Origin: Hydrolagus colliei
Lineage: Eukaryota
DNA: 64,000 bases
Direction of reading: 5' to 3'
Assembly: GCA_035084275.1 (NCBI GenBank)
Contig: CM068745.1
Span: forward strand, 82,646,001-82,710,000
Part shown: piece by piece, positions 3,776-62,200 of the stretch
Layout: each line of letters starts with the position of its first letter
Position numbering within the stretch: the stretch's first letter is position 1
Translations under genes and position numbers: made by a program
Notes under the pieces: model-generated
Seen by the model: the letters and a program-made list of their open reading frames with translations, nothing else
Databases searched by the model: none
Told to the model about the DNA's origin: nothing

Positions 3776-4125
3776 GTGTGAATGGAGGCTGAGGCAGTAT
3801 GAATGAATGGAGGCTGAGGCAGTATGAATGAATGGAGGCTGAGGCAGGATGAATGAATGGAGGCTGAGGCAGGATGAATGAATGGAGGCTGAGGCAGTAT
3901 GAATGAATGGAGGCTGAGGCAGGATGAATGAATGGAGGCTGAGGCAGGATGAATGAATGGAGGCTGAGGCAGGATGAATGAATGGAGGCTGAGGCAGTAT
4001 GAATGAATGGAGGCTGAGGCAGGATGAATGAATGGAGGCTGAGGCAGGATGAATGAATGGAGGCTGAGGCAGGATGAATGAATGGAGGCTGAGGCAGGAT
4101 GAATGAATGGAGGCTGAGGCAGTAT
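3776..4125. repeat. 25-bp minisatellite, 14 copies
   Basis: Unit GAATGAATGGAGGCTGAGGCAG(T/G)AT. Confidence 0.95.
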
Positions 4126-4531
4126 GAGTTGTGTGACAGAGCGATGCATGTTACACCATCTGGAGGAGTAGCTTTCAGGAGCTACCACCCACCCACACAA
4201 ACACATCCACACCACACACACACCCACACAAACACACACACCCACCCACACACACAAACACACACACACACACTGCATTATGAATATGAATCATGCAGTT
4301 GTTGTGATTATAGACACTGGGCTCTTTGTCTATGGTGGATTGCCACGTTTTTAATCGTTTGTCCCAACAACACACTTATTTTCAATGTTACAGAGCGATG
4401 TTAGCAAGTGCTTCTTGTGAGTGTGAAAATTCCACTTAGCATGAGAATTGGGCTACATTTCTAGGGAGGACTGACTAGCTACCCATGCTCGCAGGAACCA
4501 ACCAGGCTCATTCAAGATAACTACTGTCTTC

Positions 4532-7961: not shown

Positions 7962-8339
7962 GTGTCTGTACTGCTCAAAGGCTTGTGCAAGTACAAGAGA
8001 GTCCCCTGGTCCGAGCCGAAGGTTATCACATAACCATGAAGTGTAACGTGAGCGGGTACGAGGGCCTAACACAGCAGAACTTCGAGTGGTCGATCTATCT
8101 GCCCTCCGCCCCGGAGAGACAAATCCAGATCATCAGCACCAACGACCCCAGCTTCCCCTACGCCGTGTACGGAAGCAGAGTGCAAAGCAAAGAGATCTAC
8201 ATCGAGAGAGTCGACAGGGACTCAGTGCTTCTACACATCACGAACCTACAAGCTGAAGATGCTGGGCAGTATGAGTGTCACACTCCCAACACAGAATCTA
8301 CCTACTGGGGTTCGTACAGTGCCAAGGGAGATCTGATAG
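7962..8339 (+). CDS. IGSF3: IGSF3 exon, end of signal peptide plus Ig1
   Basis: tttcag|GT..ATAG|gtaag; (G)[32 protein letters not shown]...[23 protein letters not shown]; 378 nt. Confidence 0.96.
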
Positions 8340-12577: not shown

Positions 12578-15500
12578 TCGCCCCCCCCCCCCCCCCCACC
12601 CCATATTTAATCTTCTACTTTCCGAATTGTATCTTCCATGTTCCACTACAGGTTCAGGTCCACTTTCATCTAAAAAACTCAATGCTCAAATACCTCAAAC
12701 TGATTTGTGAGACTGTGAAGGGAATTCCCGACATCACAGCCTGACTTGACTTCTGACCCGTCGGATCCTGATACAGAGAGTGATCGGGCAATACAAGGCA
12801 TACAAGGCTGTTAAAAAGGCATATGGGATACTAGGCTTTATAAATAGGGGTATAGAGTACAAAAGTCAGGAAGTGCTGACTAACCTCTATAAGACTTTGG
12901 TGAGGCCTCAGCTGGAATACTGTGTTCAATTCTGGTCACCACACTACAGAAAGGATGTGAAGGCATTGGAAAGGGTACAACGAAGATTTACTAGGATGGT
13001 GCCAGGATTGAGGGACTTCAGCTATGAGGAGAGGCTAGATAGGCTAGGGTTATTCTCTCTGGAGCAGAGAAGATTGAGGGGAGATCTAATAGAGGTTTAT
13101 AAGATCATGAGGGGTTTCGACAGGGCAAATAGAGAAAAACTATTTCCACTCGTGGGCGAATCTGTGACTCGTGGTCACAGATTTAAAATAGCTTCAAGGC
13201 GAAGTAGAGGGGAGCTGAGGAGAAATTTTTTCACTCAGCGTGTTGTTCGAATCTAGAATGCATTGCCTGAAAAGGTGGTGGAGGCTGATTCGATAACAAC
13301 TTTTAAAAGGGAATTAGATCTTTATTTAGGGAGAACAGGTCTATTAGGCTATGGGGAGCAGGCAGGGCAGTGGGATTGAATCGCTCTTTTCAAAGAGCCG
13401 GCACAGACTAGATGGGCCGAATGGCCTCCTTTTGTGCCGTAAAATTCTATGAATCTATGAATCTATGAATCTATGAATACATACGCAGCATTTTTACTGT
13501 ACCGTTTTAACTCCCCCCAATTTGGAATTACATTCAGGAAATGAAAAGAGGAATTAAGAGTTTGTTGCGGGGGTTTGCTTGTTGGATTTATCCCCTCATC
13601 ACCTTCATAATGAAGCATCTGGGTTTGAAATTAATAATAAAAAAATTATAATAATAATAATCCTCGGCATTTGATGTAGTGCTTTTCACAAATTATCGAC
13701 GTCGCAAAGCGCTTCACAGAATATACTGTAAAGTGAATTGACTGTATATTTTGTTGGGAGCGAAACGCGGCAGCCAATTGCGCACAGCAACGTCCCCCAC
13801 AAACAGTCGTGGATTGAAATGACCAATTTTTATTATTGTGTTGTTTTTTGTGGGGGACGTATTATTATTATGCGCGTGTGTGTGTGGAGCAAGGAAACTT
13901 GCCCGAGGTTTCGACCTGATCTGCCTGGTTTCAAACCCAGGGCTCACACTTCTAAGGCGAGTGCTCTAACCACTGAGCTACAGGAGCTTCATTCAGCTGT
14001 GCAAGAGCTGTGCAAAAATTACTGTTTATCTCCCAATTTGACTCAATTGATTTTAAAATCCCCAAGCAGTTGGCAACAAGCTGCGATCCGTTAAACAGAA
14101 TGATTTCCTATAGATCATTTACAATGGTTTGGAAATCTGGCCATTTCTAAGCTTATTAACCCAGGTTTTTAAATATAGTTGTTCCAATCAACTCAGTCTT
14201 GTTTCACAACATTGGGTTTTGGAAAAATCTTTTAATTTCTGCATTTGTCACTCACTCAGCCAAACAAAATCAATAGGGAATTTCTGCCAATGCCAGTGCG
14301 TGTGGTGGCTGATGATATTGGAATATTCCCTTTATTGTGCAATCAACCGAGTTGGGGTGAACACTGGCGGCAATACTTTACTCCTGTGTTGAACTTGATA
14401 CCCTGAGCCTCCCACAGTTTCCACCAGCCACACCAGAGTGAAGGAGAGAGATGTGTGTCCCTGTGTTGGACTTCGCATTATCTAACTGGAGCCCTGTAGC
14501 TTCCTGGTTAAGAGTACTCGCCGCCTCGCAAGTGAGAGTGTGACCTGGGTTCGATCCTCGAAAAGGGGCGAAATGTTAGGCAAGTTTCTTTACTCCACAC
14601 GCCTCCGTTTACCTGAGCTAGCAGTAGGTAGGAACATGGTTTCGAAGGCATAGTGAGGTTGGGTTGAGGAGAACGAGGAGGCAGAGAGGACCCCCCCGAT
14701 CACAGATGGACAATATGTCAAAAGGAGCAGTTTCTGTGAGCGCAAATACAGACACAAGTAAAAAAATGGTCTCATCATTGTACCTTCTCATGTACAAGCA
14801 ATGATATTACTGAAGAATATCAATGTTTTACCTAAAGTCCTGGTGTTTAAATATACTTTTCATTGTAATATTAATAATAACTTGGCATTAACATTTTTTC
14901 CTCCAAAATTGCACCCAATTTTTACTGCAACAAAAAGCCACTTGTTATGGGTGTGGATGAGGACTTCAGAGAGAAATAGAGCCAAATCAGACAGCTGAAG
15001 GTTGGAACCCCACCCCCTCTCTACTGCAAACCAGCTGCCTGGTGGGTCATTCCTGTCACCCAGCTCCCGCATAGACTCTTTCAACGAACTCCCAGAAACC
15101 GCTGCTTCCATTTTCGCATCCATTGGTTGCTAAAAAAAAAAAAGGCCTTCTCTGCGTTCAGACCTGTTACTGTACTCGCTCTGAATTATTCATCTCTCCA
15201 GCTGGATGGTGCAATCACACACCTGCCCTGGGGCTTGGGAATCAGATGTTCACTTCTGCTCTCCTGAATGCTGATTCCAAATAAAAGATTCAGATCGACT
15301 GATACGCACATTTCATATAAGGCTGATGCAATCGATGCATTCATACCTTAAACCACTGATGCAGAGCAACGCACAGTTAACGTAGATAAGGGGAACGCAG
15401 TGGATGGTGGTGTATCTGGATTTTCAGATGGCCCTTTGGTAAGATGGATTGAGACACAACAACAAAATTACACATTGTGGGTGGGGGGGCAGAGTCCCAA

Positions 15501-34748: not shown

Positions 34749-37700
34749 AGTAAGGAAACTTGCCCAAGGTTTCGCCCTGACCTGCCTGGATTCAAACACA
34801 GGTCTCACACACTTGTAAGGCGAGTGCTCTCTTAACCACTGAACTATAGGAGCTCCACAGGAGCTTTGACACAGTAAAACCTATGTTAGTGTTAACGGAA
34901 GGTCTTATTTAGGCTCGGTAGCATTCTGTTTGAGGGTAGTAAAAACCCACTGTGAACTCACAGGGGAGAACTTCCAACAGATTGTGTGAACTTTATAGAA
35001 AAATCATTATCTTCTGCTTTGGTGGGGGAAACAATAGATTGAGTGGAACGCAAGGGAGCAAAAGGTACAGTGTTTTTGGTCTAAAGATCTCAAGATCCTA
35101 TTCTAACAGCACAATGGAATCTTAAATCTTTTGTGGAGCTCCTGTGGCTCAGTGGTTAGAGCACTTGTCTTGCAAGCTGGGGAGACCAAGCTGGGGAGAC
35201 CTGTGTTCGAATCCAGGCAGGTCAGGGCGAAACCTTGGGCAAGTTTCCTTACTCCACACGCCTAATAATAATCCCTCCAAACAAACCCACAATAATAAAA
35301 TTGGTCATTTCAACCCATGACTGTGTGTGGGGGACGCTGCTGTGCGCAATTGGCTGCTGCGATTCGCCCACAAATATACACAGTCAATTCACTTTATGGT
35401 GTATTCTGTGAAAAGCTTTGAGACGTCGATAAGATGTGAAAAGCGCTATATCAAATGCAAGGATTATTATTATTATTATTATTGTTAAACCAACGGATTT
35501 CACGTTTTAACTGCTCGCTGTCCCAGACTGAATAATTTAAAGTTCCAGACTGAATACTGAATATTATGCATTATTCTAGCCCAGCATCGTGAAGGGTTGT
35601 TGACAGATTCTTTTTATTTAAATATTTGATGATTTGCCGGAGAGAAAAGATTGGAAAATACTGTACCACAGATTGCCTCAGCCATCTTCTCTGTGGGCAG
35701 GTGAAAGGGTGCGAGGGATGAAATAGGCCAAATTTTCTGTTTAAAAAAAAAATCTGTGACTATATCAGGGTCGAAACAAAAAGAAACTGGGAAATGAGTG
35801 ACTGCAAATATTCCCAAAACACTTTCTGCGTTTAGCCTTCCATTGCATGCGAATGCTACTTGCTGTAGTTTCTATATTTTTTTCTCTAATTCTGATGAGT
35901 CAAAATAGCTCCCTTCGCACACAAAAAAAACAACAACACATTAAGGGAGCTCAAGGTTTATTTTCCCAAATGATTGGGAATATCTTGGGGGTGGCGGGGG
36001 GAGAAATAGGAGAGACAAATGAACGTACTGTAATTATGGGGAGGAGCTGGAGGTTTGTCACATCTGGTGTGACATTCCAGGTGTTTTGGCTTTTTCTACT
36101 TACACACCCAGAGGGACATGGAAGTATAGGTCAAATCCCCTGAAGCTTCCCAGGCCTTCTCAGGCCTAATTACAGAGACTTGTCTGAGGAATGACACATT
36201 ACCTAAAAGGCAGGGGGAGGTGGGTGGGTGGGTGGGTGGGGGTGGAATATAAAATTCATCTCTTAAGAAAAACACATGCGCTATCATATAAGCCAAAGCT
36301 TTCTGACATGCCTGCGTTTTATTTGGCTTTTTGTGGCTCATTATGTTTTAAATTAGAATGAAACGATTCGTTTTAGAATCTCAATTCCGTATTTGATTGG
36401 AAATACTTTTTCCTCTAGCTATTATTTTTTTCACACATCATTAGCCAGCGGCATTAAAAAAAAATTGTTCCCCAGCCCCCCCCCCATTGTAAATTCAGTG
36501 GATAAACACTAACTGGTTTTATGATCGTAAAATAATAATAATAATACTTGCAATTGACACAGTGCGTTAACATTTCATCTCCCTTGCTCGCTGTAGGACA
36601 ATTTTACTTTGGCCTGTACTGTAATGGTCCTTGGCAGCTGTGTTAATCATTGCTCAAACTCCCTGAAGAGATGCACTTGCATTTAACATGATGGAACCTA
36701 AGACATAATAATAATTCTTGATTTGATATTTGATACAGCGCCTTATTACTGAGACGCCTCAAAGCGCTTCACAGAAGATACTGTAAAGTAGATTGACTGC
36801 GTATTTTGTGGGTGAAATGACTTGAGGTCTGTGTGTGTGAAGAGGAAAATGTACTTTTTTTTCCCAATGTATGACTCCCGAATGCTGAGCAATTTAATGC
36901 CCACTTTGCAGAAAATATATCCTTCGCATTATTATTCAATCCCATTCAAACATAATTAGTTACTCTTAAAGAATGTTTAACGTTGGAAATTCTTTCTGTG
37001 ACATTTAATATAAATCACCTTTGGCTTAGTAAAGTACCAGATACTGAAATTGAATTCAATCAGACTGACAGTCAGCGAGGCTGCAGTAATAGCTGGTGAG
37101 CAGTTTAAAGCTTCTACCTGTATGAAAAACTGTATGGTTTAAGATTCTGAGCACAAGTACTGATAGAGAATGTGGATCCTCAGCTATGACTTCACCTGTG
37201 AGGAGAAGCTAGAGAGGCTAGGTTTATTCTCATTGGAACAGAAAAGGTTACGAGGAGACCTAATAGAGGTTTTCAAGATCATGAGGGAATTCGACAGAGT
37301 AAACAGGGAAAAACTGTTTCCACTGGTGGGCGTATCAGTGACCCGTGGTCACAGATTTAAAACAGTTTCTAAAAGAAGCAGAGGGGAGCTGAGGAGAAAT
37401 GTTTTTCACTCAGCGGGTTGTTGGAATCTGGAATGCATTGCCTGAAAAGGTGGTGGAGGCCGATTCGATAACAGCTTTCAAAAGAGAGGTAGACGTTTAT
37501 TTGGGGAGGACGGGTTTGCGAGGTTATGGGGAGTGGCCTCATTCAAAATGGCCTCCCTCAGTCATCCGTGCTTCAATCCTCCAGTCATCAGAACTTGTGG
37601 AAGTCATTGGGTTCACAATACTGTAGCACTAGAAAGTAGTTCAAAATTCAGAGCGCGTAAAGAGAAAAGGTAACGTTTTCAGCAGCAGCCGCGACAGTAG

Positions 37701-49400: not shown

Positions 49401-52400
49401 AAAACCATGAAACGTGGGAAGCATGGAAATTGCTAGCACAAAAGAGAGCTATTATACATTAGTTATGAAGTAATATTCTGTTGTTACTCTTTGTGCATTG
49501 CAGTTGATTTTATTTGAATATTTTTGATTACATTATGTTGTGTGCTGCTGATATCAAGGGAATTGGCTGGGAGGAGTTACTAAGCCTTAGGATTCAATTA
49601 ACATGTCTGCAGATAAATCGTTTAGTCCGAGATGCTCGAGCAATTCTGTTTATTCAGACCAAAACTCAACAACTCCTCTCAGCGGCTCAGAAATGGTCTC
49701 ATATATGTCACTGTTTAACCAAACCATTAAAACCTAATTGTGGATTTGTATGAATACATACAGTTTTTATTCTGCCACTGTGTGGGGTTGGGGGTGGGAG
49801 GAGAAAAGAGATGAAGGCAGTGAGAGCGATACCACAATAATAATAATAATCCTTGCATTTGATACAGCACTTTTCCACGTCTCGAGAAAGCGCTTCACGG
49901 AATATACTGTAAAGGGAACTGACTAAATTTGTGGGCGAAACGCGGCAGCCAATTACGCCCAGCGGGGTCCCCCACAAACAGTCGTGGATTAAAGTGACCA
50001 GTGTACTGTTTATGGGAGGGGCAATATTTAAAACACCCTGTGCAGTTTTAATTTAGATACAGAAATTTTCAAAATGAATAATTTGGCGGTTTCAATGGCC
50101 TGACTGTTTTGTGGGACATCGAAAAAGTATACAGTCAATTTTACTTTTTAACGGTATATTCTGCGAAGTGCTTTGAGGACGTCTCAAACGATGCGATAAA
50201 GTGCGATATCAAACGCAAGGATTATTATTATCAAAATGTTTTTTTCCCCATTTTTTGTTCCAGTTCAGCTGGATTGTAGCCGTACAGTTTAGTAGGCTTG
50301 TCTGCTGAAGAAGTGGGAGGGTGGCGGTGGGAGAGAAGGAAACATCTGAACTCTCAGTTCAGGGGTAACATTGGGAGTAGCCATGCACTTGGCCTAAATT
50401 CTCCAGCTTATAGCGAAAGGGAAATGAGCCCAGCACACTCTGTTCCTGATCTCTACCCAGTGACTGTCTCCCTGGCTGGCTGTGTGCGTGCGTGCGTGTG
50501 TGTGTGCATGTTATGGGAGGACACAATCGATGGAGCTCAAAATCCCCTGACAACTTGTCGGGAATCACTGTTCGGACTCGCTTACGAGAAAAATAAAAGG
50601 TGCCTCTTTCACTATCTGTAACCGACCTTATCACCAGCGGAAGAAAAACAAGTCAAGAAAAAAAATTGGCCACTAGTTTTCTTAAAAAATATTTCCTACA
50701 TTGACCCAGTTAAAAGATGGAAGTCTGTTTAGTGTTTTGTGATACTCCGGGTCTTATCCGGCAGCCCTAAATCGTTTAAATGTTCAATTACAAAAAGCAA
50801 TTGGAAAGCTCACTCGAGCTATCGTGATACAGATTGCATCCGATGCAAAAAATGCTTTTTGTTTGCTGACGAGTGCCTCCCGGCTAAAGGGCCTCAAAAG
50901 CCGTCCGGGGAACCGCGTACTCCGCAATGACAGGCGCGAAACAAACACAAGTAGTCGTCATTGACGGTGGAACGCTCTCTGTCTTGTGTTCGGGGACGCA
51001 CTCCGCCTTCGGGGAGCGGTCTGCCGTGAAAACGAAACTCATGAAACCTCAAAACGTGGTGTGTTTTTCCCTTGCAATCCGCAGAAAGCAACTTGCAAAT
51101 CCTGAAAACCGAGCGGAACATCTCCACGCCGGAGGCCAGCTGGATTCAGCTGGACTGTCGCGTCAGCAACCGCACCAGCCCGGACTCCCAGCTCTCCGTG
51201 ACCTGGTACGTCTGGAGGGCGCTGGAGACCGAAAGGCGGGACATTTTCAGGCTGAACAGGAATTCGGTCTTCGAGTACGGAGGCTCGGCTGACAACGCCA
51301 TCAGACTGAAGGACAGACTCCAGTTCGAAAGGTCCTCCGCGGGCCTGTACAGCTTAGTCCTGCAGAGAGCCACCACCGGCGACAGCGGAGGCTACTACTG
51401 CCATGTGGAAGAGTGGCTGCTCGATGCCAAAAGCCTCTGGTACAAAGTGGGAGAGGATCAGTCGGGGACCGTTTCTGTCACCGTACAGCAGCCAGGTATT
51501 GCGCGAGTCCTGCATTTCCCCCGGAGTAAGATTTTAATGAAAGGAGTTGTTTGTGAAAGCTGTCCCGCCCATAGGCATCAGCATCACATTAACAGTAATG
51601 TGTTGTTCAGGCCCTGACCTCATCTCCCAGGTGGCCCGTTACTAATGGCCAGTGGCTGAGTGCTTTGGTGAGTTAAGAACGGACGGACAGACGCTGTTTG
51701 AAAAGCGGAACCGGAATTCTAATGGATTTCTGATCAACACCATGAAGTTTCCAGCCACCCACCCACCTACCCACCCAGCCACCCACTCAACCTACCCACC
51801 CACCTAACCACCCACCCACTCAACCTACCCACCCACCTAACCACCCACCCAGCCACTCACCCACCCAGCCACCTACCCACCTACCCACCCAGCCACCCAT
51901 CCAGCCACCCACCCACCTAGCCACCCACCCAGCCACTCACCCACCCACCTACCCACCCACCCAGCCACCCACCCAGCCACGCACCCACCCACCCACCCAG
52001 CCACGCACCCACCCACCCAGCCACGCACCCANNNNNNNNNNNNNNNNNNNNNNNNNNNNNNNNNNNNNNNNNNNNNNNNNNNNNNNNNNNNNNNNNNNNN
52101 NNNNNNNNNNNNNNNNNNNNNNNNNNNNNNNNNNNNNNNNNNNNNNNNNNNNNNNNNNNNNNNNNNNNNNNNNNNNNNNNNNNNNNNNNNNNNNNNNNNG
52201 CCACCCAGCCACCGGAAGCAAAAATTGCAAAGATCAAATGTTTAAATCATGCCGCTGTTTTAAGAATTCGGTGCTAAGAATCTTCACATCAGCCAAATTC
52301 ACAGGGTCAGATGACTGCAGTTTCTCACTGCCCCCTGTGCGCTAAAATGCCAAACACACAGAGCGTCACATACAGGAATATAATAAGGTTCCCGTTAGAT

Positions 52401-55400
52401 TAGAGCCTGAGGAAGGCTCCCAAATTACTGTGACACAACACAGCGTCCAGGCTCGCATCGTGGATGTCCCCTACTTTGCTTACTACTCTGTGTGTGTGTG
52501 TGTGCCTTCATCCCCACCCTTCCTTCTCCTTCCTCCCCCAAGTGAGCTGGAGCAGGCTTGTCAGTAAATAGATTGATATGTGGGCAGCTGGGTGAAGTAG
52601 GTCATACACACACACTGAGTGCTCCCATTTAACTATCAAACTCTGAAACCTATCATTGCTCGAGAATACAAATACATGTACATTGAGATGCTAAATGCAC
52701 GGCCGCAATCCACAGTGGAGACCAGAGCAGCCACTGTTATTGGACGATCCCAAAGCTGGCAATGGCATTGAAATAAGGAAGTCAATTTTGTAAGGATGTG
52801 GTTTGAGACCCACTATTCCCAGGAAAGCATCCCATAATAGTCATGGACATCGTTAAAATTTAAATTCCCCGCGCTTGGTCATCTGGAGCTCCTGTAGCTC
52901 AGTGGGTTAGACCACTCACTCGCCTTGCAAGCGTGAGAACTGTGTTTCGAATCCAGGCAGGTCAGGTCAGGGCGAAACCTTTCAGCAAGTTTCAGCCTCT
53001 CTCTGCCACCCCTCCACCCCACCACCTCTGGAACTCCATCCAACAGTTCCTTCGCTTCGTTCCCTCACTGGCATCCTTCAAGTCCCGCCTCAAGACCCTC
53101 CTCTTTGACAGTCCCATTGGTCACCCGCCCACCACCCCCCACCCCCGTTTCCCTCCACCCTCCCCATCCCCCATCCCAGCTCGGGTCTCAAACCCATGCC
53201 TCCTGACGTGAAAGGCGCTATACAAGTGTAATGCTGTTGTTGTGTTTGGTGTGGAAAAGAATACGTAGAGAAAAGTGTCCGTTCCAAATCTCAGCGTTGG
53301 GTTCAAGCGAATTGTGAGATCAGTGCTACAAATTGGATAATTTTGTAATCGACTGATGTGGAAAGCCTCATAATTGGACAAAGATGAAAACCGGCTGAGG
53401 AAAGCTAATTGATACGGTTGAATTTAGCTGAAGGCAAATCTCTTCAAATCTCATTAGCACCATTGGTGTTACTGTTGACCTCATCGAAGTGCGAATTCTT
53501 AACAGGGAAATTTTAATTGAAATACCGGCAGGCCCCCGTTTTTTTTAACTACTGATTAAAGTGGTGTCAATTATTGCCACCTGAGGTTGGAGTAGGCGTA
53601 AGATGTGGCCGGGCCAGGCGATGATAGGAAGCATCCCAGCTTCTCATGATTCAGTCAGGCGGATAGAGAAATCGGTCTGCGATGTCCTCCAGGAAGTGCT
53701 CAGCGACTTTGGAGGAATAATTGCGAGTTTGTTGATAAGACGCGGTTAATTGGCCCCGGTTTACATGCGGAGACTGACTGTTCCGCAGGGCAGGTGAGTG
53801 TTTCCTCTCTTTGTAACTCCCTCCACCCACCCACCCATAAACACACACACACACACACACACACAAAGTATCACAATACTGGATCTGAAACTGCCCATGG
53901 AGACATTATGATGATAAAATAATAATAAAATGGATCATTTTCAATCCACGGCAGTTTGTGTGGGGGACGCTGCTGTGCACAATTGGCTGCCGCGTTTCGC
54001 CCACAAATATATATATACACAGTCAATTCACTTTACAGTATATTCTGTGAAGCGCTTTGAGACACAATCTAGAAGACGTGAAAAGCGCCATATAAAAATG
54101 CAAGGATTATTATTATTATCAGAGATGTGGAAACCATTGGGTTCACAATACTGTAGCGCTAGAAAATAATTCAAACGCAAGGATGATTATTATTATTATT
54201 CTGAAATGGTCGTACTGTTCAGAATCTGGGATGGGGTGGGTGTGGGGGGGGGGGGGGGAGAGAGGGTGGAAGGTGAGGGGAGAGGGCAAGGGCAGGGGTC
54301 ACTGTAGAGTGAAATATCTGATGTAAATTCCTTATCACGGGCTACATTACAGTGGGATAAAATAGTGGGCTCCCCAGCTGTGTCTGTGATGATGTTGGTT
54401 TAATGCGATCACACTTCCCGGTGAGAGAGCTGCACATCTCCAGGCAGCTGGTACGGCTGCTGTGGTGACTCGAGTCCCCGCACTACAGCTCTCGGGAAGT
54501 AGTTAAGATGGATTTGTTAAAGGCAAATCTTGCCTTACAAATCTGATAGAATGTTTTGATGAGGTAACGGAATGGGTGGATAATGGTAGCGCAGTTGATG
54601 TAGTTTACATGGACTTTCAAAAGGCATTTGACAAAGTGCCACATGAGAGACTTATTATGAAATTAAAGGCCCATGGCGTAAAAGGGACAGTGGCAGCGTG
54701 GATCCACAACTGGCTGCGAGACAGAAAGCAGAGAGTTGTAGTGAGCGGCTGTTTTTCAGATTGGAGGGAAGTGAGCAGTGGTGTGCCACAGGGATCGGTT
54801 TTGGGACCATTGCTGTTTGTAATCTACATCAATGATCTGGACTTGGGTGTCCGGAGTACAGTTTCCAAGTTTGCAGATGACACTAAGTTAGGGAGAATAG
54901 TAAACAGTGAGGAGGATAGTAGCCATCTGCAAGAGGATATAGACAAATTGGTAAAGTGGGCAGACACATGGCAGATGAAGTTTAATGCAGAGAAGTGTGA
55001 GGTGATGCATTTTGGGAGAAGAAATGAAGGGAGGCAATATAGGCTAGATAGTACAATTTTAAATGGTGTGAAGGAACAGAGAGACCTGGGGATTTGTGTT
55101 AGTGACTCGTTGAAGGTGGCAGGACAGGTAGACAAGGCTGTTAAGAAGGCATATGGGATACTAGGCTTTATAAATAGGGGTATAGAGTACAAAAGTCAGG
55201 AAGTGCTGACTAACCTCTATAGGACTTTGGTGAGGCCTCAGCTGGAATACTGTGTTCAATTCTGGTCACCACACTACAGAAAGGATGTGAAGGCATTGGA
55301 AAGGGTACAACGAAGATTTACTAGGATGGTGCCAGGATTGAGGGACTTCAGCTATGAGGAGAGGCTAGATAGGCTAGGGTTATTCTCTCTGGAGCAGAGA

Positions 55401-58400
55401 AGATTGAGGGGAGACCTAATAGAGGTTTATAAGATCATGAGGGGTTTCGACAGGGCAAATAGAGAAAAACTATTTCCACTCGTGGGTGAATCTGTGACTC
55501 GTGGTCACAGATTTAAAATAGTTTCAAGGCGCAGTAGAGGGGAGCTGAGGAGAAATTTTTTCACTCAGCGAGTTGTTTGAATCTGGAATGCATTGCCTGA
55601 AAAGGTGGTGGAGGCTGATTCGATAACAACTTTTAAAAGGGAATTAGATCTTTATTTAGGGAGAACAGGTCTATTAGGCTATGGGGAGCGGGCAGGGCAG
55701 TGGGATTGAATCGCTCTTTTCAAAGAGCCGGCACAGACTAGATGGGCCGAATGGCCTCCTTTTGTGCCGTAAAATTCTATGATTCTATGATTTAAAACGG
55801 CTCAAACCCTCTGTAAAAAGTTTTTTTTTAATTAAAAAAAGGAACATCACCCACTTCCATCCCATTAGACTCTCCTCGTCTCCTGGAGGTCTCTGCTCTT
55901 TGCCGGGTGGGTGATAGCTCCGCAGACACCAGACGCTCCTAGGCTTATCCACCTGCATCCCGGGCACCAGACACTCCTAGGCTTGTTCATGATTACGCTC
56001 GCAAGTGAGAGGATCCGGGTTCGATTCCTGGCACGGGATGAAACGTTTGGCAAATTTCCTTACTCCACACGTCTCCCATTTACCTCGCAGTAAGTAGGAC
56101 TTACTTACCCCCAAAAAAACAATGTGGTGGTTCCATGTATGACCGTTTGTGGGGGATGCTGCTGCTGTGCGCAATTGGCTGCCGCGTTTCACCCAGAAAA
56201 TAGACAGTCAATCCAATTTACAGTATATATTCTGTGAAAAGCTTTCAGGCATCTCAACATCATGATAAGGCGCTATGTGAAATGTAAGGATTTATTATTA
56301 TTATTATGCACAAATGTGCCAGAGAGTGAAAGGTGACGTTTGGGGGAGGAAGACACAACTGAGGTTAATCGGTAGATTTAATAATAATAATAATAATAAT
56401 AATGCATTTCCCAGAAAGGTGACTGGATAGGGTTGAGGAATTGGAGAAAAGAAACACAAAATACTACAGATGCTGGGAATCTGAAACAAAAACGAAGGTT
56501 GCTGGGGAAACTCAACAGGTCAGGCAGCATCCATGGAGAACGGAAAAAGAGTCAACGTTTAAGGTTGTAGACCCGAAACATTGACTATTTTTCCTTTCTC
56601 CATGGATGCTGCCTGACCTGCTGAGTTTCCCCAGCAACCTTCGTTTTTGTTTGAGGAATTGGAGCCCTGGCTACCTAATCTCATGGGAGAGTAAACAGTC
56701 CCTCCAATCTCCGACCCAACCCTCATCGATGGTCCTTGCAGATGAAAAATAGCCATTTGAGCAAGACAGTGCAGAAATTCAACAACAACAACTGTGATTT
56801 AATTTAATTAATGCCAGACGGCATCTCAGAGCGCCTTCAGCTCCTATGAAACAAAACTGGCACCTTCGGGAAAGGAGGAGACATGAAAAAAAGAGGGGGA
56901 AAAAGAACCTGGAAGATGTGTGAGAACGTTTGATTTTTAAAAAAAATTGTATTAAAAAGCTTTTTTCTCTCCCATTTTTGTTCCCTGTCACCTCTCTACC
57001 AAAAGAATTCAAGATGCAGGTGGATAAAACTGAACTGAACGTCACGGTATCAAACAAGGGCGCCTTTCAGCTCAACTGCAACGTGACTTACCGCACGCGA
57101 GAGGATTCCAGATTCGCTGTGTCCTGGCTGGCCTGGAAATCCAAAGTGGTGGCTGACCAGACGGTGAAGGAAACCATTTTGAAAATCGACTATAATTCGG
57201 TCTTCGAGTACGGCGGCAGCTCGCGCGGCGGAGCTGAGGGGATGAGGGACAGACTGAAGCTAGAGAGACCCTCCAGCGGGCTGTACAGCCTAACAGTGCG
57301 CAACGCCCACACCAGCGACAGTGGGAGCTATTACTGTCACGTGGAGGAGTGGGTCCAAAATGCCAACAACGGCTGGTATAAACTCGGGGAAGGGGAGTCT
57401 GGATTGCTTATCATCGCCATACAAAACACAGGTAAACCTGTTCCCACGTCATCGTGTCATAACCCTAATCCTACTGATTCTATGTGATCACATTTCCACG
57501 TCCCTGGAAAGGCGCTCTACAGATGTAATTTTGTTGTGGCTGAGCAGCAGAAAGTAACGTCAAAGGCCAGTGGTACGTGTATTCCGTAAGTCAGAAGTGC
57601 TTGTTAGTGTTACTGCAAAAAATATATATAGATTGTAGATTATAGAATTTTACGGCACAAAAGGAGGCCATTCGGCCCATCTAGTCTGTGCCAGCTCTTT
57701 GAAAAGAGCGATTCAATCCCACTGCCCTGCCCGCTCCCCATAGCCTAATAGACCTGTTCTCCCTAAATAAAGATCTAATTCCCTTTTAAAAGTTGTTATC
57801 GAATCAGCCTCCACCACCTTTTCAGGCAATGCATTCCAGATTCGAACAACTCGCTGAGTGAAAATAATTCTCCTCAGCTCCCCTCTACTGCGCCTTGAAA
57901 CTATTTTAAATCTGTGACCATGAGTCACAGATTCGCCCACGAGTGGAAATAGTTTTTCTCTATTTGCCCTGTCGAAACCCCCCATGATCTTATAAACCTC
58001 TATTAGGTCTCCCCTCAATCTTCTCTGCTCCAGAGAGAATAATCCTAGCCTATCTAGCCTCTCCTCATAGCTGAATATATATTATATAAAGTCTTATATA
58101 GTCATGGAGTCAAAAATTGTGAGGGGAGATACGTCCACCTCCACCACCACAGTGAAAACTTCACTCGAAGATACACTGAGAGGAATCTGAGGGAATGGTC
58201 ATGCTTGATCGCCCCCTTGAGTTTGTTTCAGGATAGCGTTACTGGTCCATAGCTTCGTTTAAACTTTAGTTAAATTACAGTAAAACCTTGCTGATCCGGC
58301 ACCCAACCAACCGGCAAACTCAAATCAACCGGTATCTCCCAATACAATTCACCATTCCAGCAACCAGATCTCGTACCGGAAGCCGTCCGGGACACTGGCG

Positions 58401-59235
58401 AGTATGCTCACTTTGCTGGAATGCTTTTTTCCCGAATGTTTTACCAAGTGTGCTGGAATGCTTTGTTGGTAAGTATTCATACAACATTCTGTTATTATAT
58501 AGTCTGTTAATATGGTATGTTTTAAAATAATATAATTTTTTTGTTGTAGGATTTTCGGCAACTTGCCGCTCAAATATCCAGGACATTTGATTAACCGGCA
58601 CCGGGCAGGTCCCGAGGGTGCCGGATAACAAAGTTTTTTTTTTTATACTGTTAATAACTGGGTTTCTGTCTTGACACCAGGTTGGAGTTTGCGCAATGAA
58701 ATTTGACCGTATGTCATTTAGAGAGAAAAAATTAATAAATTAATTAGGGGAAAGAGGAGAAACCATTTGAAGATTACCATATTTTTGTCACAATCCCACC
58801 TGAAACACATGTCGGAAAAGAAACCAATACTAGGAAGCTGGAATAGTGTCACTCAATTGTCACTCTGACGAAAACATAAAGCATAACATAATAAAACATA
58901 ACAGAAAGGACGAGGAGTGTAAAGTAACGAAAAATCATTTTGTTTCAAGACGTATTAATGAGCTTTGGCTATTCATCCTTCCAGGTTCTTCTTTGCAAGA
59001 GGCAATTTGTTCAAACGACGCCCTTTTCTACTTCATATTTTTCTACCCGTTCCCGATTTTCGGAATTCTTCTCATCGCCATTTTGCTGACGCGCTACAAA
59101 ACCATGAACGCCCAGAAGAAATCGGATGGGAAAAACGGGGTTCCCTTGCTCTGGATTAAAGAGCCGGCAGTAACTTACTCTCCAACCAGCCTCGAGCCAC
59201 CGGATTTCAGAATAGGACCTGGCGGACTTGCTTAG
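7962..59235 (+). CDS. IGSF3: IGSF3 (immunoglobulin superfamily member 3 / EWI-3); 9 coding exons in window, 5' signal-peptide exon missing
   Basis: Nine exons with canonical AG/GT ends join in frame (378+408+390+402+402+411+411+426+251 = 3479 nt; all internal junctions phase 1). Product is 8 V-type Ig domains, with EWI motif in Ig2, plus TM and the tail [23 protein letters not shown], which matches human IGSF3 as I recall it. The 8-domain count and long tail separate it from IGSF8, PTGFRN and CD101. Confidence 0.96.
8605..8945 (-). mobile_element. L2 3'-end fragment, subfamily B (also 5520-5800 on -)
   Basis: Reverse complement is closely similar to 21920-22285 and 27420-27740; (TTG)n tail. 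Confidence 0.85.
11328..11436. mobile_element. Small palindromic MITE-like element
   Basis: Perfect 14-bp TIR GTGTCCGGCGATAT / ATATCGCCGGACAC; interior built of ATATCGAT units. Confidence 0.6.
12802..13478 (+). mobile_element. CR1 LINE 3' fragment, same subfamily as 54508-55792
   Basis: [30 protein letters not shown]; about 10 differences in ~650 bp versus 55132-55780 by eye; (CTATGAAT)n tail. Confidence 0.95.
13648..13988 (-). mobile_element. Full-length SINE, same family (another at 41861-42123 -)
   Basis: Head gctcctgtagctcagtggttagagcactcgcc on minus strand; same core and tail. Confidence 0.85.
16365..16870. repeat. C-rich low-complexity tandem array (similar array at 43372-43725)
   Basis: 18-bp units such as cctcctccccctcccacc; source of the Pro-rich and Gly-rich ORFs. 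Confidence 0.9.
18445..19840 (-). mobile_element. L2 (LINE2) 5'-truncated copy, RT C-terminal half with frameshifts
   Basis: [45 protein letters not shown]..; [10 protein letters not shown] motif is in a shifted frame; (TTG)n tail at 18445-18470. Confidence 0.93.
21920..22285 (+). mobile_element. L2 3'-end fragment, subfamily B
   Basis: cagtttcaggtcacagctgaagacctttctcttc..gtgaagcgctctgagatgcc..ttgttgttg. Confidence 0.85.
23430..23837 (+). CDS. IGSF3: IGSF3 exon, Ig2 (carries EWI motif; absent from the supplied ORF track)
   Basis: (ct)n-tacag|TC..GTCG|gtaag; hand translation [43 protein letters not shown]...[39 protein letters not shown]; 408 nt, no stop. Confidence 0.96.
23857..24020 (+). 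mobile_element. CR1 3'-UTR fragment just after the Ig2 donor, interrupted by (GA)n
   Basis: caacttttaaaaggga..aatggcctccttttgtgccataagattctatgatt matches CR1 3' ends elsewhere in the window. Confidence 0.8.
24786..25227 (-). mobile_element. CR1 LINE 3' fragment, different subfamily
   Basis: Minus ORF ..[35 protein letters not shown]..; aacataagaa-type tail. Confidence 0.9.
26472..26861 (+). CDS. IGSF3: IGSF3 exon, Ig3
   Basis: ccgcag|AT..GTCA|gtaagt; [41 protein letters not shown]...[27 protein letters not shown]; 390 nt. Confidence 0.96.
27240..27740 (+). mobile_element. L2 3'-end fragment, subfamily B
   Basis: Contains ..[23 protein letters not shown].. RT tail motif and (TTG)n end. Confidence 0.88.
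30782..31183 (+). CDS. IGSF3: IGSF3 exon, Ig4
   Basis: catcaaag|AG..CTCG|gtaag; [27 protein letters not shown]...[25 protein letters not shown]; 402 nt. Confidence 0.95.
31462..31781. mobile_element. hAT-Charlie (MER5-like) MITE nested in a SINE
   Basis: TIR CAGTGGTTCTCAA / TTGAGAAACCCCTG; 8-bp TSD ttctaggc (31454-61) / ttctagac (31782-89), NTCTAGAN-type target. Confidence 0.85.
32052..32459 (+). mobile_element. L2 3'-end fragment, subfamily A, interrupted by a palindromic insert; tail abuts the Ig5 acceptor
   Basis: Matches the reverse complement of 48000-48340 and 18450-18700 except for the insert at ~32124-32259. Confidence 0.85.
32468..32869 (+). CDS. IGSF3: IGSF3 exon, Ig5
   Basis: atgacag|AA..CCAG|gtatgg; [29 protein letters not shown]...[22 protein letters not shown]; 402 nt. 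Confidence 0.95.
33344..33674 (+). mobile_element. Full-length tRNA-headed SINE, DeuSINE-like, with L2-type tail
   Basis: A box TGGCTCATTGG 33354-64, B box GTTCGAATCC 33398-407, core tgctgtgcgcaattggctgccgcgtttc, tail gaagcgctttgagacgtc..(tta)n; family name is from recalled similarity to SacSINE1/AmnSINE1. Confidence 0.85.
34485..34859 (-). mobile_element. Full-length SINE, same family, (CA)n linker
   Basis: Reverse complement of the 33344 and 35131 copies. Confidence 0.85.
35131..35483 (+). mobile_element. Full-length SINE, same family, with internal 14-bp tandem duplication
   Basis: A box TGGCTCAGTGG, B box GTTCGAATCC; aagctggggagacc twice at 35174-35201. Confidence 0.85.
37180..37560 (+). 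mobile_element. CR1 LINE 3' fragment, older
   Basis: [37 protein letters not shown] with a frameshift; related to the 55 kb copy. Confidence 0.9.
45050..45460 (+). CDS. IGSF3: IGSF3 exon, Ig6
   Basis: cccaacag|AT..CCAG|gtatt; [27 protein letters not shown]...[28 protein letters not shown]; 411 nt. Confidence 0.95.
47205..47675 (-). mobile_element. Older, longer DeuSINE (SacSINE1-like) copy; related relics at ~7230-7350 +, 17660-17800 -, 39690-39900 +, 44420-44600 -, 63230-63400 -
   Basis: Minus strand reads cagcctggctc..gcactc..tctgagtcagaagactgtgggtttgatccc..ggaggtgcc..gttaaa, then the same Deu-like core and tail; family name from memory. Confidence 0.65.
48000..48340 (-). mobile_element. 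L2 3'-end fragment, subfamily A (similar short pieces at ~30570-30680 +, 37830-38090 -, 40380-40510 -, 53000-53245 +, 63600-63720 +)
   Basis: Shares tail acatttatagagagcctttcacgtcgggaggacgtc with 18470-18515. Confidence 0.85.
48620..48713. repeat. (TCAG)n-(TCAC)n compound microsatellite
   Basis: Direct reading. Confidence 0.95.
51085..51495 (+). CDS. IGSF3: IGSF3 exon, Ig7
   Basis: tccgcag|AA..CCAG|gtatt; [27 protein letters not shown]...[20 protein letters not shown]; 411 nt. Confidence 0.95.
51755..52212. repeat. (CCAC)n-type array spanning an assembly gap
   Basis: ccacccagcc/ccacccacct units on both sides of the Ns. Confidence 0.9.
52032..52199. other. Assembly gap (168 N)
   Basis: Run of n characters. 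Confidence 1.
54508..55792 (+). mobile_element. CR1 LINE, 5'-truncated young copy (RT C-terminal half plus 3' UTR)
   Basis: [43 protein letters not shown]..; single TGA at 55578; ends in the CR1-type octamer (ATTCTATG)n. Confidence 0.95.
56447..56650 (-). mobile_element. 204-bp fold-back retro-insert (Penelope-associated chondrichthyan repeat type) with 14-bp TSD
   Basis: TSD TTGAGGAATTGGAG at 56433-46 and 56651-64; arms 56484-56560 / 56576-56652; a one-arm relative at 48727-48870. Confidence 0.75.
57006..57431 (+). CDS. IGSF3: IGSF3 exon, Ig8
   Basis: ctaccaaaag|AA..ACAG|gtaaac; [27 protein letters not shown]...[20 protein letters not shown]; 426 nt. Confidence 0.94.
57642..58075 (-). mobile_element. 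CR1 LINE 3' fragment, inverted relative to 55347-55780
   Basis: Reverse complement matches 55347-55780 with about 8 mismatches in 434 bp. Confidence 0.95.
58278..58650. mobile_element. Tc1/pogo (Tigger-like) MITE
   Basis: ta|CAGTAAAACCTTGCTGATCCGGCACC ... GGTGCCGGATAACAAAG(T)nATACTG; imperfect TIRs, left TA present, right flank is TT. Confidence 0.7.
58985..59235 (+). CDS. IGSF3: IGSF3 last coding exon: stalk, TM helix, cytoplasmic tail, stop
   Basis: ccttccag|GT; [86 protein letters not shown]. Confidence 0.96.
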
Positions 59236-61159
59236 TGGAGTGAAAAGGGGATGGATTTTCTTTTTTGGAAAACAAAATTGAAAGACAATTGGGAGACCAA
59301 CATTACAATGAATTATGGAATTTATAGGACCCACCCCCACCCCCCCCCCACTCCCCCTCCCACCCCCCCCCCCCCCCCCCAAATAATCCTAGAATGGAAA
59401 ATATATCATCACCTCTCAAAACATGGACTCTTTAAGAGTCTTAAGAGGCATTGGAGGTACGATGGGACGGAAGATACATTTTATTCCCAGATATTTAGCC
59501 CGTTTGCCTTCCTCTAAACCCCAACCCCACACACAATTACTGAGTCAAGTAGAAACTCAAAGTGTTTTAATTTTACACCAATGTAGGTCTAATCTCCCCC
59601 TCTCCCCCCACCCACCCCACAGTCTTTTTTGCTGCATGAGAATTCTGCTTACATCACATTTGTTGGCTGTTTATCTGGATTGCAAACACCTCAATCCCCT
59701 GCCCCCCCCTCACCCCCAACTCAAAAAAAAACTTATTGCTCCTGAAGAAAGCAGAATTGTAGCAAATGTCAATACTTTGGGATGTGGGAGGGGGTGGGGG
59801 GGGGGGGGGGGGGGGGGGGAGTGGGAAAGGGTGTACAGTGTTATCTGCGTGGAGGTGGAGGAAAACGAAGCAAAATTGAAGTAGCTTCTTTGCAAGGATT
59901 CACAACTATCCCAGAGTTTATGCTTATTGATCGAAAACATCATCTTACTCCAAGGGAATGTTGCCTGAAGATTGTATTGTGCACCTGTATTGTGCACAAT
60001 CGTGCACCTCAGGTCAGTGGTGGTAACGATCCTGTGGAGGAGAGGGTTTGGCGTTTCGGGGATCGTTTTTGTTTAGCCACGCAGACTGATAAAACCGAGA
60101 GAGGGACGAAGATCACACAGAGACTTGAGGGGAGAGCGACTGCACTGAAGCCTTCTCTGTGAGCTTGTGGGTCAAGCCAATTGGTGGTGCTTGACGAGCA
60201 TCAAACGAACCCCATGATATTTACGTTGAAAAGACTATAACGAGGGCATCTTGTCCGGACACTGGTTCCTATCAATGAAGCCATGACAGTGTTATTATAT
60301 GAAGACAGAGTTAAGTTGGATACAGAATGCCTGCGCACAAGGGGGGACAGCGAACATCAATTTTGTGTTTTTATCGAAACACAAACAAGGAGCAACTAGC
60401 GAGTCCACCCAGAGGTTGTTCAACCCACTCTGGATTCTGGATTTCCCATTTCTGAGTATATGTTTTGATGGAGGAACCTAATTGAGCTGACCCAGTAACC
60501 CCCCCCACCCAGTCTATAGTGAAATGTAATCTCTCAGCCAGTTAGGTTTCCTTTTTTTTATATACATCGTTTTGCACTTTTTGAAATTACTTTTTATTCT
60601 GTGCTTCGAGAAGAAATATTCCTGTGATTAGTAGCCCGCCTGGTTTTTGGTTTTCACGCTGTACTTTTTAAGCGTTTCAATATTATCAAAATGAAATGGC
60701 AACTAAGCCTGAACTAGCCCAACAGATCCAGTGGACCCCCCCCCCCTCGCAAAAACGTTGAATGTGCGGACGCAATACTCAGGGCGGTTGCCAAGAAGAG
60801 ACTGTTCAGTCCAAATCAAATGGTAATAATTTGGCCTGAGGCTGAAATGTTCACTCACGCACTCTGTTATAAGAAGTCCATTTGCATTCACTAACTACCC
60901 TTCAAATCCTTACGTTGTCATCCGACTTTGTACTGCTGTGCGTTTGTGTTGTAATTGTACAGTACGCGCAAAGCCACAGTGTCAGGAGCGGAGACAGAAA
61001 GTGACTAGTTTGCAAACCCGAGAATAACTTTTGCGCATGCGATGCACACGTAAAAGGCAGAGATCTTAAACATTGATGGGACCTCTGCAGAGCTTAGTGA
61101 TGACTCCAGGTTCGAAGTGTGAAGGGGGGAAATGGATGTGGAAACACTAGTATTTAACA

Positions 61160-62200
61160 GTGTGTGTATGTGTTTGTATGTGTGCAGGTGATTGTGTGTG
61201 TGCGCGTGCAGTGTGTGTGTGCATGTGTTCGGATGTGTGTGCGGGTGTGTGTGTGCGGGTGTGTTTGTATGTGTGCAGGTGATTGTGTGTGTGTGTGTAG
61301 TAGGTGTGTATCGTGTGTGCGTGTGCAGTGTGTTTGTGTGGGGATGTTTGTATGTGTGCGAGTGATTGTGTATATGGGGTGTGTGTGTGTCTGTGTGCGG
61401 ATGATTGTGTGTGTACTGTGTGTGCGGTGTGTGCATGTGTTTGTATGTGTGCGAGTGATTGTGTATAAGGGGTGTGTGTGTCTGTGTTTGCGGATGATTG
61501 TGTGTGTACTGTGTGTGCGTGCGGTGTGTGCGTGTGTTTGTATGTGTGCGAGTGATTGTGTATCCGGTGTGTGCGGGTGATTGTGTGTGTGCAGTGTGTG
61601 TGCAGTGTGTGCATGTGCGTGTGTTTGTATGTGTGCGAGTGATTGTGTGTACGGTGTGTGTGTGTTTGTGTGCGGATGATTGTGTGTGTGTGCGTGCGGT
61701 GTGTGCGTGTGTTTGTATGTGTGCGAGTGATTGTGTATACAGTGTGTGTGCGGGTGATTGTGTATGTGCAGTGTGTGTGTATGCGGTGTGTGTGCATGTG
61801 TTTGTATGTGTGCGAGTGATTGTGTACAGTGTGTGTCTTTGTGTGTGCGGGTGATTGTGTGTACGGTATGTGAGTCTGTGTGTGCAGATGATTGTGTGTG
61901 TGCAGTGTGTGTGTGGAGTGTGTGTGTGGAGTGTGCGTGCAGTGAGTTTGTGTGTGGGTGTGCGCGTGTGGTGTGTGTGTGTGCATGCAGTGTGTGCGTG
62001 TGTCTGTGTTCGGGTGATTGTGTGTGCATGCGGTGTGTGTGCATGTGTATGCAGTGTCCTTGTGCGGTGTGTGTGTAGAGGTTGTGTGCGGGTGTGTGTG
62101 CAATGTGCACATGTATGTGGTGTGTGTGTGTAGAGGTGTGTGTGCATGTGTGCAGTATACGTGTGTATGCGCAGTGTGTGTGTGTGTGCGTGCGTGTGTG
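61160..62200. repeat. ~1-kb compound (TG)-rich array with higher-order units
   Basis: Recurring gtgtttgtatgtgtgcgagtgattgtgt blocks; source of His/Thr-rich and Cys/Val-rich ORFs. Confidence 0.92.

Follow-up and report, generated by a model that had tools for sequence, protein, structure and literature searches.

In the window analysed here, a stretch of 64,000 nucleotides of genomic DNA, the exon encoding the eighth Ig domain (Ig8) of an IGSF3 orthologue is bracketed by two nearly identical, inverted copies of a CR1 LINE, which are predicted to pair on the RNA. This pair came about through two independent insertions, and we consider it likely that any effects it has on the RNA are a by-product of transposon activity, not an evolved switch. 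The role of a switch, which an earlier note on this DNA had proposed for the pair, would be an extrapolation from an established mechanism. The features on which the argument is built are collected in Table 1.

Table 1. Features of the IGSF3 locus, with their positions in the window
Feature	Positions	Strand	Basis or remark
Third young CR1 (copy C), between Ig1 and Ig2	12796..13452	+	98.2% identical to the upstream copy
Older CR1 (copy D), between Ig5 and Ig6	37188..37536	+	84.5% identical
Ig7 exon, donor for the predicted skipped isoform	51085..51495	+	Splice sites, translation
Run of N, upstream intron	52032..52199	.	Inside the intron between Ig7 and Ig8
Upstream CR1 LINE (copy A), 5'-truncated, 1293 nt	54491..55783	+	RT ORF, 3' hairpin, octamer tail; bounds from the C. 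milii empty site
Arm A, partnered portion of the upstream CR1	55347..55783	+	2 private substitutions, both CpG>TpG
Ig8 exon, V-set Ig domain, 426 nt, phase 1-1	57006..57431	+	Splice sites, translation
Arm B, downstream CR1 copy (copy B), 437-nt 3' fragment	57639..58075	-	7 private substitutions; no counterpart in C. milii
TM/cytoplasmic exon with stop codon, acceptor for the predicted skipped isoform	58985..59235	+	82/82 aa identical to C. milii

The gene model comprises eight phase 1-1 Ig exons and a TM exon, and encodes 1158 aa with eight Ig domains (V-set/I-set; Pfam V-set, E = 9e-65), a single TM helix and a short tail. It is 92% identical to IGSF3 of Callorhinchus milii and 48.5% identical to the human protein, it is collinear with the C. 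milii locus, and all of its best matches that carry a source name are IGSF3. The model also contains a Glu-Trp-Ile motif in Ig2, which we take to be the motif that gave its name to the EWI subfamily, IGSF3 included. Gene model and collinearity agree with the earlier note that the gene is IGSF3 and the exon its eighth Ig exon, and, judged from its sequence, the gene is the IGSF3 orthologue of a holocephalan other than C. milii. The length and phase given before for the Ig8 exon were also recovered. This exon shares 87% of its nucleotides and 88% of its amino acids with the C. milii exon at a dN/dS of 0.14, which points to purifying selection on Ig8 in the past; the ratio is silent on the time since the pair was formed, because that time makes up a few percent of the branch.

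The borders of the Ig8 exon (...ctaccaaaag/AATTC and ACACAG/gtaaac) are canonical AG/GT, and the junction that would join Ig7 to the TM exon is in frame. In a qualitative comparison of the nine acceptors of the gene, the Ig8 acceptor was found to have an A at -3, AAAA before the AG, 75% pyrimidines at -20..-5 and a long pyrimidine-rich tract upstream. The corresponding acceptor in C. milii reads ...ctcacaaaag/AATTCA, in a locus that lacks both CR1 arms, and the AAAAG acceptor is therefore ancestral. Thus, of the weak AAAAG acceptor described in the earlier note, the AAAAG is indeed there, but it is shared with a species that lacks the pair and has the long pyrimidine-rich tract ahead of it.

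Arms A and B are reverse complements over 437 nt with 428 matches (98%), the nine mismatches being seven transitions and two transversions, with no indels. The spacing between them is 1855 nt, of which 1222 nt separate the end of arm A from the Ig8 acceptor AG (57004-57005) and 207 nt lie between the Ig8 donor (57432) and the start of arm B, in keeping with the earlier estimates of 1.2 kb and 210 nt. The pair had been described as 434 bp long with about eight mismatches; its existence and its identity of ~98% hold, but both counts had to be corrected to the values given here. Likewise, the upstream arm was correctly recognized, but it is merely the 3' third of the 1293-nt, 5'-truncated CR1.

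Three lines of evidence, i.e. the RT ORF, the 3' hairpin and the octamer tail, agree with the previous assignment of the repeat to CR1. The upstream CR1 lies in the sense orientation in the intron between Ig7 and Ig8, and is the sole copy long enough for an RT; its RT ORF (54507-55577) matches Pfam RVT_1 (E = 1.5e-26). Its 3' hairpin (55700-55783) folds at -31.8 kcal/mol with a z of -3.8, and it ends in a (ATTCTATG)2 octamer tail with the letters ATTCTATGATTCTATGATT. The tail takes the form (GAATCTAT)n in copy C, and is degenerate in arm B, which occupies the Ig8-TM intron in antisense orientation relative to the gene and carries the tail at its low-coordinate end. All CR1 copies in the window are 5'-truncated, none being full-length. 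A 3' hairpin followed by an 8-bp microsatellite, ATTCTRTG, is a hallmark of CR1 (PMC8665684), and the CR1 traits matched by the copies in the window have also been described in PMC4316615. The copies therefore resemble the CR1 LINEs of amniotes (PMC4316615, PMC8665684) in their RT ORF, severe 5' truncation, 3' hairpin and ATTCTRTG tail, whereas the host here is a holocephalan, and the assignment is based on the RT ORF, the hairpin and the tail. Both arms are 3' ends from a single young subfamily of CR1 LINEs, which was active recently and was inserted at least three times in IGSF3. For the third young copy, which had been placed at 12802-13478 with ~98% identity, the identity was confirmed at 98.2%; the measured bounds are 12796-13452, with the octamer tail extending beyond 13452. 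A search of Rfam returned no match in the pair or the loop, and two tRNA-like matches elsewhere in the window.

The earlier note had suggested a check of related species lacking one insertion; in C. milii, both elements are missing from the orthologous locus, leaving clean empty sites with flanks that align at 73-81%. Unique C. milii sequence aligns to both flanks of each arm; the boundary of copy A can be placed to within about 10 nt, and arm B may be accompanied by a short AT-rich duplication. Over 437 nt, the numbers of private substitutions in copies A, B and C are 2, 7 and 7, respectively, in a star-like pattern, the private divergence of the copies being 0.5-1.6% versus an interspecies dS of 0.35-0.85 relative to C. 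milii, and the identity between copies ceases exactly at the element ends. As the private substitutions, the truncation points (1293 versus 437 nt) and the tails differ, the arms are independent recent insertions, and both insertions are lineage-specific and very young relative to the split from C. milii. Since the substitutions of the three young copies are star-like, gene conversion between the arms is unneeded.

The 98% identity of the arms, together with an assembly gap 3.1 kb upstream, might also be read as the sign of an assembly artefact, with one arm duplicated from the other and put in the wrong place or orientation. We regard this as extremely improbable, given the nine differing sites, the seven changes that are private to arm B against two other copies, the unlike 5' ends and tails, and the identity that stops at the element boundaries, with unique, C. 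milii-alignable flanks around clean empty sites; assembly duplication was rejected as a candidate on the private changes, the differing ends and tails, and the empty sites. We also discarded the idea of one insertion inverted by twin priming, as both arms possess the same 3' end with a tail of their own, and the sequence between them, including the conserved exon, is ancestral and present in C. milii.

On the RNA, arms A and B are predicted to form a duplex of 431 bp with an energy of -864.5 kcal/mol, and this duplex also appears when the full 2.7-kb stretch is folded to minimum energy. Between the introns on the two sides of Ig8, the arms constitute the sole reverse-complementary match, and neither of them was found to have a partner within its own intron (the N run aside). 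With a 431-bp duplex able to form and no rival inside either intron, the locus offers the setting that loop-out skipping, back-splicing and ADAR editing are known to require. Possible competitors for arm B could be copies C and D as well as the content of the N gap, in which a further repeat copy could sit. Copy C had been named as a competing partner that would loop out Ig2-Ig8, and the 2850 nt of exons calculated for this loop were confirmed (predicted duplex with arm B, -836.9 kcal/mol), but copy D had been omitted; it is a weaker partner, with a predicted duplex of -500.6 kcal/mol and a loop of Ig6-Ig8 containing 1248 nt of exons. In addition, the duplex may be melted by heavy editing or by helicases.

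Inverted intronic pairs have been shown by experiment to promote back-splicing and exon skipping (PMC4201285, PMC8330042, PMC10901737, PMC13019027), with reverse complementary matches promoting both processes alike (PMC8330042). Inverted repeats of 30-40 nt are enough for circularisation; some pairs yield no circles, and stronger hairpins can be inhibitory (PMC4201285). In TBXT, skipping of an exon is caused by the Alu pair that encloses it, whose members are separated by 1448 bp, an unrelated inverted sequence also gives skipping, and higher identity and shorter distance lead to more of it (PMC10901737). Skipping is favoured where the acceptor is weak and the donor strong (PMC13019027), ADARs act on inverted-repeat duplexes (PMC8938519), and circRNAs have been reported in a shark (PMC7759564). 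The AluY/AluSx1 loop-out of TBXT exon 6 in hominoids (PMC10901737) is like the present locus in that an inverted pair in the introns on either side of a single in-frame exon was completed by a lineage-specific retroelement that is missing from an outgroup. The distance between the arms is 1.4-1.9 kb across both systems, and in both the nearest pair is expected to beat partners further away. On the other hand, the arms in TBXT are Alu SINEs with 228/297 matches, whereas those considered here are CR1 LINE 3' ends, both young and 98% alike, in a cartilaginous fish for which the loop-out is predicted. The circles of ZKSCAN1, HIPK3 and EPHB4 (PMC4201285) and of C. elegans zip-2 (PMC8330042) share with the Ig8 locus complementary intronic repeats, canonical GT/AG sites and the lack of a within-intron competitor; they differ in that Northern blots, RNA-seq and RNase R revealed those circles, whereas the one here is predicted. 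In addition, the 437-nt arms greatly exceed the minimum of 30-40 nt, and at such lengths stronger pairing is sometimes inhibitory.

We therefore propose the following course of events for a by-product of two insertions. The 1293-nt copy was inserted in sense 1.2 kb upstream of Ig8 and the 437-nt 3' fragment in antisense 0.2 kb downstream, and the 437 nt that they share would pair in the pre-mRNA to give the 431-bp duplex. This would loop out the 1855 nt holding Ig8 and draw donor and acceptor together, so that adenosines in both arms would be edited, some transcripts would be back-spliced into a 426-nt circle, and some would undergo in-frame skipping, Ig7 being joined to the TM exon to encode a 7-Ig protein, while the full 8-Ig mRNA would stay the main product. 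The past purifying selection on Ig8 and its retention in the shortened isoforms of other vertebrates (see below) count against this proposal; strong skipping of Ig8, if it occurs, might be selected against.

A clearly less probable alternative, to which we nevertheless give some weight, is that the pair is a neutral accident that leaves splicing unchanged and yields neither circles nor skipped mRNA in measurable amounts, either since splicing takes out the introns before the arms pair or in spite of their pairing, or since editing or unwinding undoes the duplex. Constitutive exons, too, are flanked by inverted Alu pairs, in tens of thousands of cases; skippable exons differ little from constitutive ones in folding energy, and only a small part of the variance in skipping is accounted for by structure (PMC13019027). 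More generally, the inverted Alu pairs studied genome-wide (PMC13019027, PMC13019944, PMC2533698) have the same architecture as the Ig8 locus, and the link proposed for them, to a weak acceptor combined with a strong donor, may apply here too; they reveal statistical trends of small effect size in primates, and a single pair alone is not predictive. Moreover, some strong hairpins block circularisation (PMC4201285), the donor (CAG/gtaaac) and the long pyrimidine tract look competent, and C. milii uses the same acceptor. Against this, the duplex (428/437) is far longer and more perfect than those of typical Alu pairs, it is close to the exon with no rival inside either intron, and in TBXT skipping rose with identity and with shorter distance. 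That, through the younger of the two CR1 insertions, the conserved, constitutive, membrane-proximal Ig8 exon came to be skipped and/or circularised to a substantial degree in the chimaera lineage seems to us rather unlikely.

It is far less likely still that the pair is a working switch, which produces a substantial 7-Ig isoform and/or an abundant functional circIGSF3(Ig8), possibly with rolling translation. Such a role would fit the layout, which is as in the TBXT Alu pair, and the A at -3, the purine run before the AG and the good donor, which may put the exon in the class with weak acceptor and strong donor that is reported to be prone to loop-out; in addition, skipping would be in frame. 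The stop-free circle of 142 codons pointed out earlier was also confirmed: its junction codon is GAA, it has no stop in the native frame, and the ATG at 57014 is in frame. However, this circle is not special, as all eight Ig exons yield stop-free circles, five of them also with an in-frame ATG; a stop-free circular ORF is trivial, because every exon that is in frame and divisible by three in length will give one. The open frame of the Ig8 circle is thus a generic property of the exon, and it is probably not translated. A product of the circle would also be devoid of a signal peptide, so that its Ig fold would sit in the cytosol, and the pair is very recent, leaving little time for a function to evolve.

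The layout itself likewise counts against a working switch and in favour of a by-product. As the match between the arms is repeat-derived, its chance level must be judged against random insertion, and when the three young copies were placed at random in the window, 23% of the trials gave an inverted pair whose members fell in the introns on either side of the same exon, and 2% gave one that was additionally within 2.8 kb. A pair of this layout is expected by chance at many loci.

Nor do the annotated isoforms of other species speak for a switch. Ig8 is retained in each of the 12 shortened IGSF3 isoforms that were checked, which are annotated in a ray, in reptiles and in birds, and the 7-Ig isoforms among them mostly lack Ig4, one being without Ig1 and one without Ig3. 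In searches of protein and contig collections with Ig7-Ig8-TM and with the 185-aa Ig8 ORF as queries, no holocephalan fragment was found beyond the C. milii gene model, and an exact look-up of the Ig8 ORF returned no record. Nine papers mention both IGSF3 and circRNA; none of them has IGSF3 in its title or abstract, and either term appears just 1-3 times in each.

As both insertion sites are empty in C. milii, the locus amounts to a clean natural experiment; as the mechanism is already established, the gain would be incremental whichever way it turns out. If splicing is unaltered, the locus would serve as a useful negative example, in which a near-perfect 431-bp duplex lies close to an undisturbed exon. 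If splicing is altered, inverted-repeat loop-out, which has been documented mainly for primate Alus, would also work with CR1 LINE fragments in a cartilaginous fish, and a 7-Ig form of this tetraspanin partner, specific to the lineage, would be indicated. A substantial shift of Ig8 towards skipping or circularisation, if true, would give the TBXT Alu case a natural counterpart outside the primates that is driven by LINEs, and C. milii would supply the empty-site control.

We joined the stop-free stretches of the forward strand, eight Ig-like segments and one transmembrane (TM) segment, at GT/AG sites into a nine-exon IGSF3 model of 1158 aa, the signal-peptide exon lying beyond the window. The model matches Pfam V-set (E 9e-65) and is 92% identical over its full length to IGSF3 of Callorhinchus milii and 71-73% identical to shark IGSF3, and all nine exons are collinear on the C. 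milii locus (L001) with 85-94% nucleotide identity. By these matches the DNA belongs to a holocephalan distinct from C. milii. Each of the eight Ig exons is of phase 1-1 and has a length that is a multiple of three.

The earlier note had labelled the repeat on either side of the Ig8 exon CR1, rightly so: the upstream arm forms the 3'-terminal third of an element of 1293 nt whose ORF at 54507-55577 matches reverse transcriptase (RVT_1, E 1.5e-26), whose final 84 nt form a hairpin (-31.8 kcal/mol, z -3.8), and which terminates in ATTCTATGATTCTATGATT, fitting the 3' hallmark described for CR1, in which the octamer ATTCTRTG comes after a hairpin (PMC8665684, PMC4316615). The window contains five CR1 copies, whose identities were measured with the upstream copy as query. 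The old relic starts 15 nt past the Ig2 donor (23837/gt), unusually near an exon for a retroelement remnant.

Exons of the IGSF3 model and CR1 copies in the window
Feature	Position	Strand	Remark
Ig1 exon	7962-8339	+	GT/AG sites
Ig2 exon	23430-23837	+	GT/AG sites
Ig3 exon	26472-26861	+	GT/AG sites
Ig4 exon	30782-31183	+	GT/AG sites
Ig5 exon	32468-32869	+	GT/AG sites
Ig6 exon	45050-45460	+	GT/AG sites
Ig7 exon	51085-51495	+	GT/AG sites
Ig8 exon	57006-57431	+	GT/AG sites
TM/tail exon	58985-59235	+	GT/AG sites
CR1 copy (13 kb)	12796-13452	+	98.2% identity to upstream copy
CR1 copy, old relic	23852-24018	+	68.5% identity to upstream copy
CR1 copy (37 kb)	37188-37536	+	84.5% identity to upstream copy
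CR1 upstream copy	54491-55783	+	query
CR1 downstream copy	57639-58075	-	97.9% identity to upstream copy

Scanning the region 54000-59500, and also the full window, for repeats confirmed and sharpened the reported inversion of near-identical copies around Ig8. Its arms (55347-55783 and 57639-58075) each span 437 nt, are separated by 1855 nt and are 98% complementary; compared base by base, they show nine mismatches (7 transitions, 2 transversions) without any indel. The distance from the end of the upstream arm to the Ig8 acceptor is 1222 nt, and the downstream arm starts 207 nt after the donor.

Over the common 437 nt, the three young copies show private changes only (two in the upstream arm, both CpG>TpG; seven in the downstream arm; seven in the 13-kb copy), and no site groups them otherwise; they also differ in 5' truncation point and tail, identity ending at the element ends. 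The note had proposed looking for a related species without an insertion. In C. milii the flanks of the upstream element (54288-54496 with L001 89769-89989; 56108-56364 with L001 90316-90561) and of the downstream element (56651-57490 with L001 90605-91365; 58142-58269 with L001 91503-91626) align, both elements are absent, and junction alignments show clean empty sites. Since the private divergence is 0.5-1.6%, against a synonymous divergence between the two species of 0.35-0.85 per exon, both insertions date from the final few percent of the interval since these species diverged. Taken together, the private substitutions, differing truncations and tails, empty sites and recent dates rule out an assembly duplication of one arm, and likewise a twin-priming inversion; gene conversion between copies is unnecessary, as the differences are private to each. 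The pair consists of independent, lineage-specific and very young CR1 insertions around Ig8, and C. milii, with neither, is a natural control.

The intron upstream of Ig8 carries a third lineage-specific insertion and second local dsRNA former, a 204-nt palindromic element (56447-56650; arms ~85 nt, 89-92% complementary) 355 nt 5' of the acceptor, with a perfect 14-bp direct duplication, TTGAGGAATTGGAG, on its two sides (span 56433-56664); the C. milii site is empty with a single-copy target, and kin copies lie elsewhere in that locus. An assembly gap (N run 52032-52199) lies within a CCCACC-type microsatellite of the same intron (51746-52342).

As RNA, the two CR1 arms are predicted to form a 431-bp duplex (-864.5 kcal/mol), all pairs of which are present in the minimum-energy fold of 55347-58075. 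In the assembled sequence, a sensitive search found no further complementary match between the introns flanking Ig8, and no partner for either arm within its own intron. The 13-kb copy, put forward earlier as a competing partner looping Ig2-Ig8 (2850 nt of exons), does pair with the downstream arm in prediction (-836.9 kcal/mol), as does the 37-kb copy, looping Ig6-Ig8 (-500.6 kcal/mol). As the nearer of two possible partners is preferred in TBXT (PMC10901737), the local pair should be favoured over both.

Four other inverted pairs (123-184 nt, 80-89%) also span exon groups, i.e. Ig2-Ig3 (8587-8710/27626-27749), Ig2-Ig5 (17265-17448/35263-35446 and 9465-9587/34549-34671) and Ig3-Ig5 (25954-26083/34508-34637), so, apart from the CR1 pair, several multi-exon loops could form in IGSF3; two further pairs lie within single introns (8775-8904/21990-22119 and 33522-33647/34507-34632). 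C. milii Ig8 is flanked by a far weaker 87-nt, 78% complementary pair (L001 90409-90495/91804-91890).

Enclosed exons circularise with inverted repeats as short as 30-40 nt (PMC4201285), complementary matches favour back-splicing of an exon as well as its skipping (PMC8330042), and such duplexes are acted on by ADARs (PMC8938519). In TBXT, an exon-skipped isoform arose from an Alu insertion completing an inverted pair 1448 bp apart; an unrelated inverted sequence had the same effect, and skipping rises with identity (PMC10901737). The mechanism proposed for Ig8 is thus already standard, its preconditions are present, and the IGSF3 pair is a fresh instance; the Ig8-skipped junction is in frame (...VTVQQP-G-SSLQ...). 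Some editing, back-splicing or skipping at Ig8, if only at a low level, seems rather probable, a substantial splicing effect of the pair would be unlikely, and a functional switch or translated circle highly improbable.

Two points offered in support of that proposal lose weight. The stop-free circle is generic, as all eight Ig exons close into a stop-free frame, five with an in-frame ATG. The acceptor that the note called weak (...ctaccaaaag/AAT), which follows a long pyrimidine-rich tract, is ancestral, C. milii having ...ctcacaaaag/AATTCA without the pair. Furthermore, very many constitutive exons are also flanked by inverted pairs and structure accounts for little of the skipping level (PMC13019027), and some strong hairpins inhibit circularisation (PMC4201285). 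When three young copies were placed at random in the window's non-exonic sequence, 23% of trials had an inverted pair in the introns on either side of one exon, and 2% had such a pair within 2.8 kb; the layout is not improbable by chance, and many such loci are expected genome-wide from an active CR1 family.

Ig8 is kept in all 12 annotated shortened IGSF3 isoforms compared. The 7-Ig forms of electric ray, snakes, lizards, crocodilians and birds lack Ig4 (Ig4-less proteins P0007, P0033, P0036, P0060, P0076, P0084, P0086 and P0112), and Ig1 is missing in one turtle form and Ig3 in one gecko form; the conserved cassette exon looks like Ig4, not Ig8. The Ig4 acceptor reads ...catcaaag/AG in the window (A at -3) versus ...ccatcag/AG in C. 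milii. Isoform X2 of Narcine bancroftii (P0054) keeps Ig1-Ig8 and lacks the TM exon, possibly a soluble form. Reading on through the Ig8 donor (57432-57487) reaches a stop (57485-57487) after 18 further codons, and retention of the Ig8-TM intron would thus yield a similar TM-less product.

Among other repeats, two tRNA-like Rfam matches barely over threshold (13921-13983, minus strand; 33347-33417, plus strand) and a dispersed repeat (55998-56304) that has a tRNA-like box, GGTTCGATTCC, at ~56030 and occurs many times in the C. milii locus are probably tRNA-derived SINEs. Three tandem arrays have a 25-nt unit in ~20 copies (3704-4202), an 18-20-nt C/T-rich unit (16349-16875) and, downstream of IGSF3, a TG-rich composition (61158-62130).
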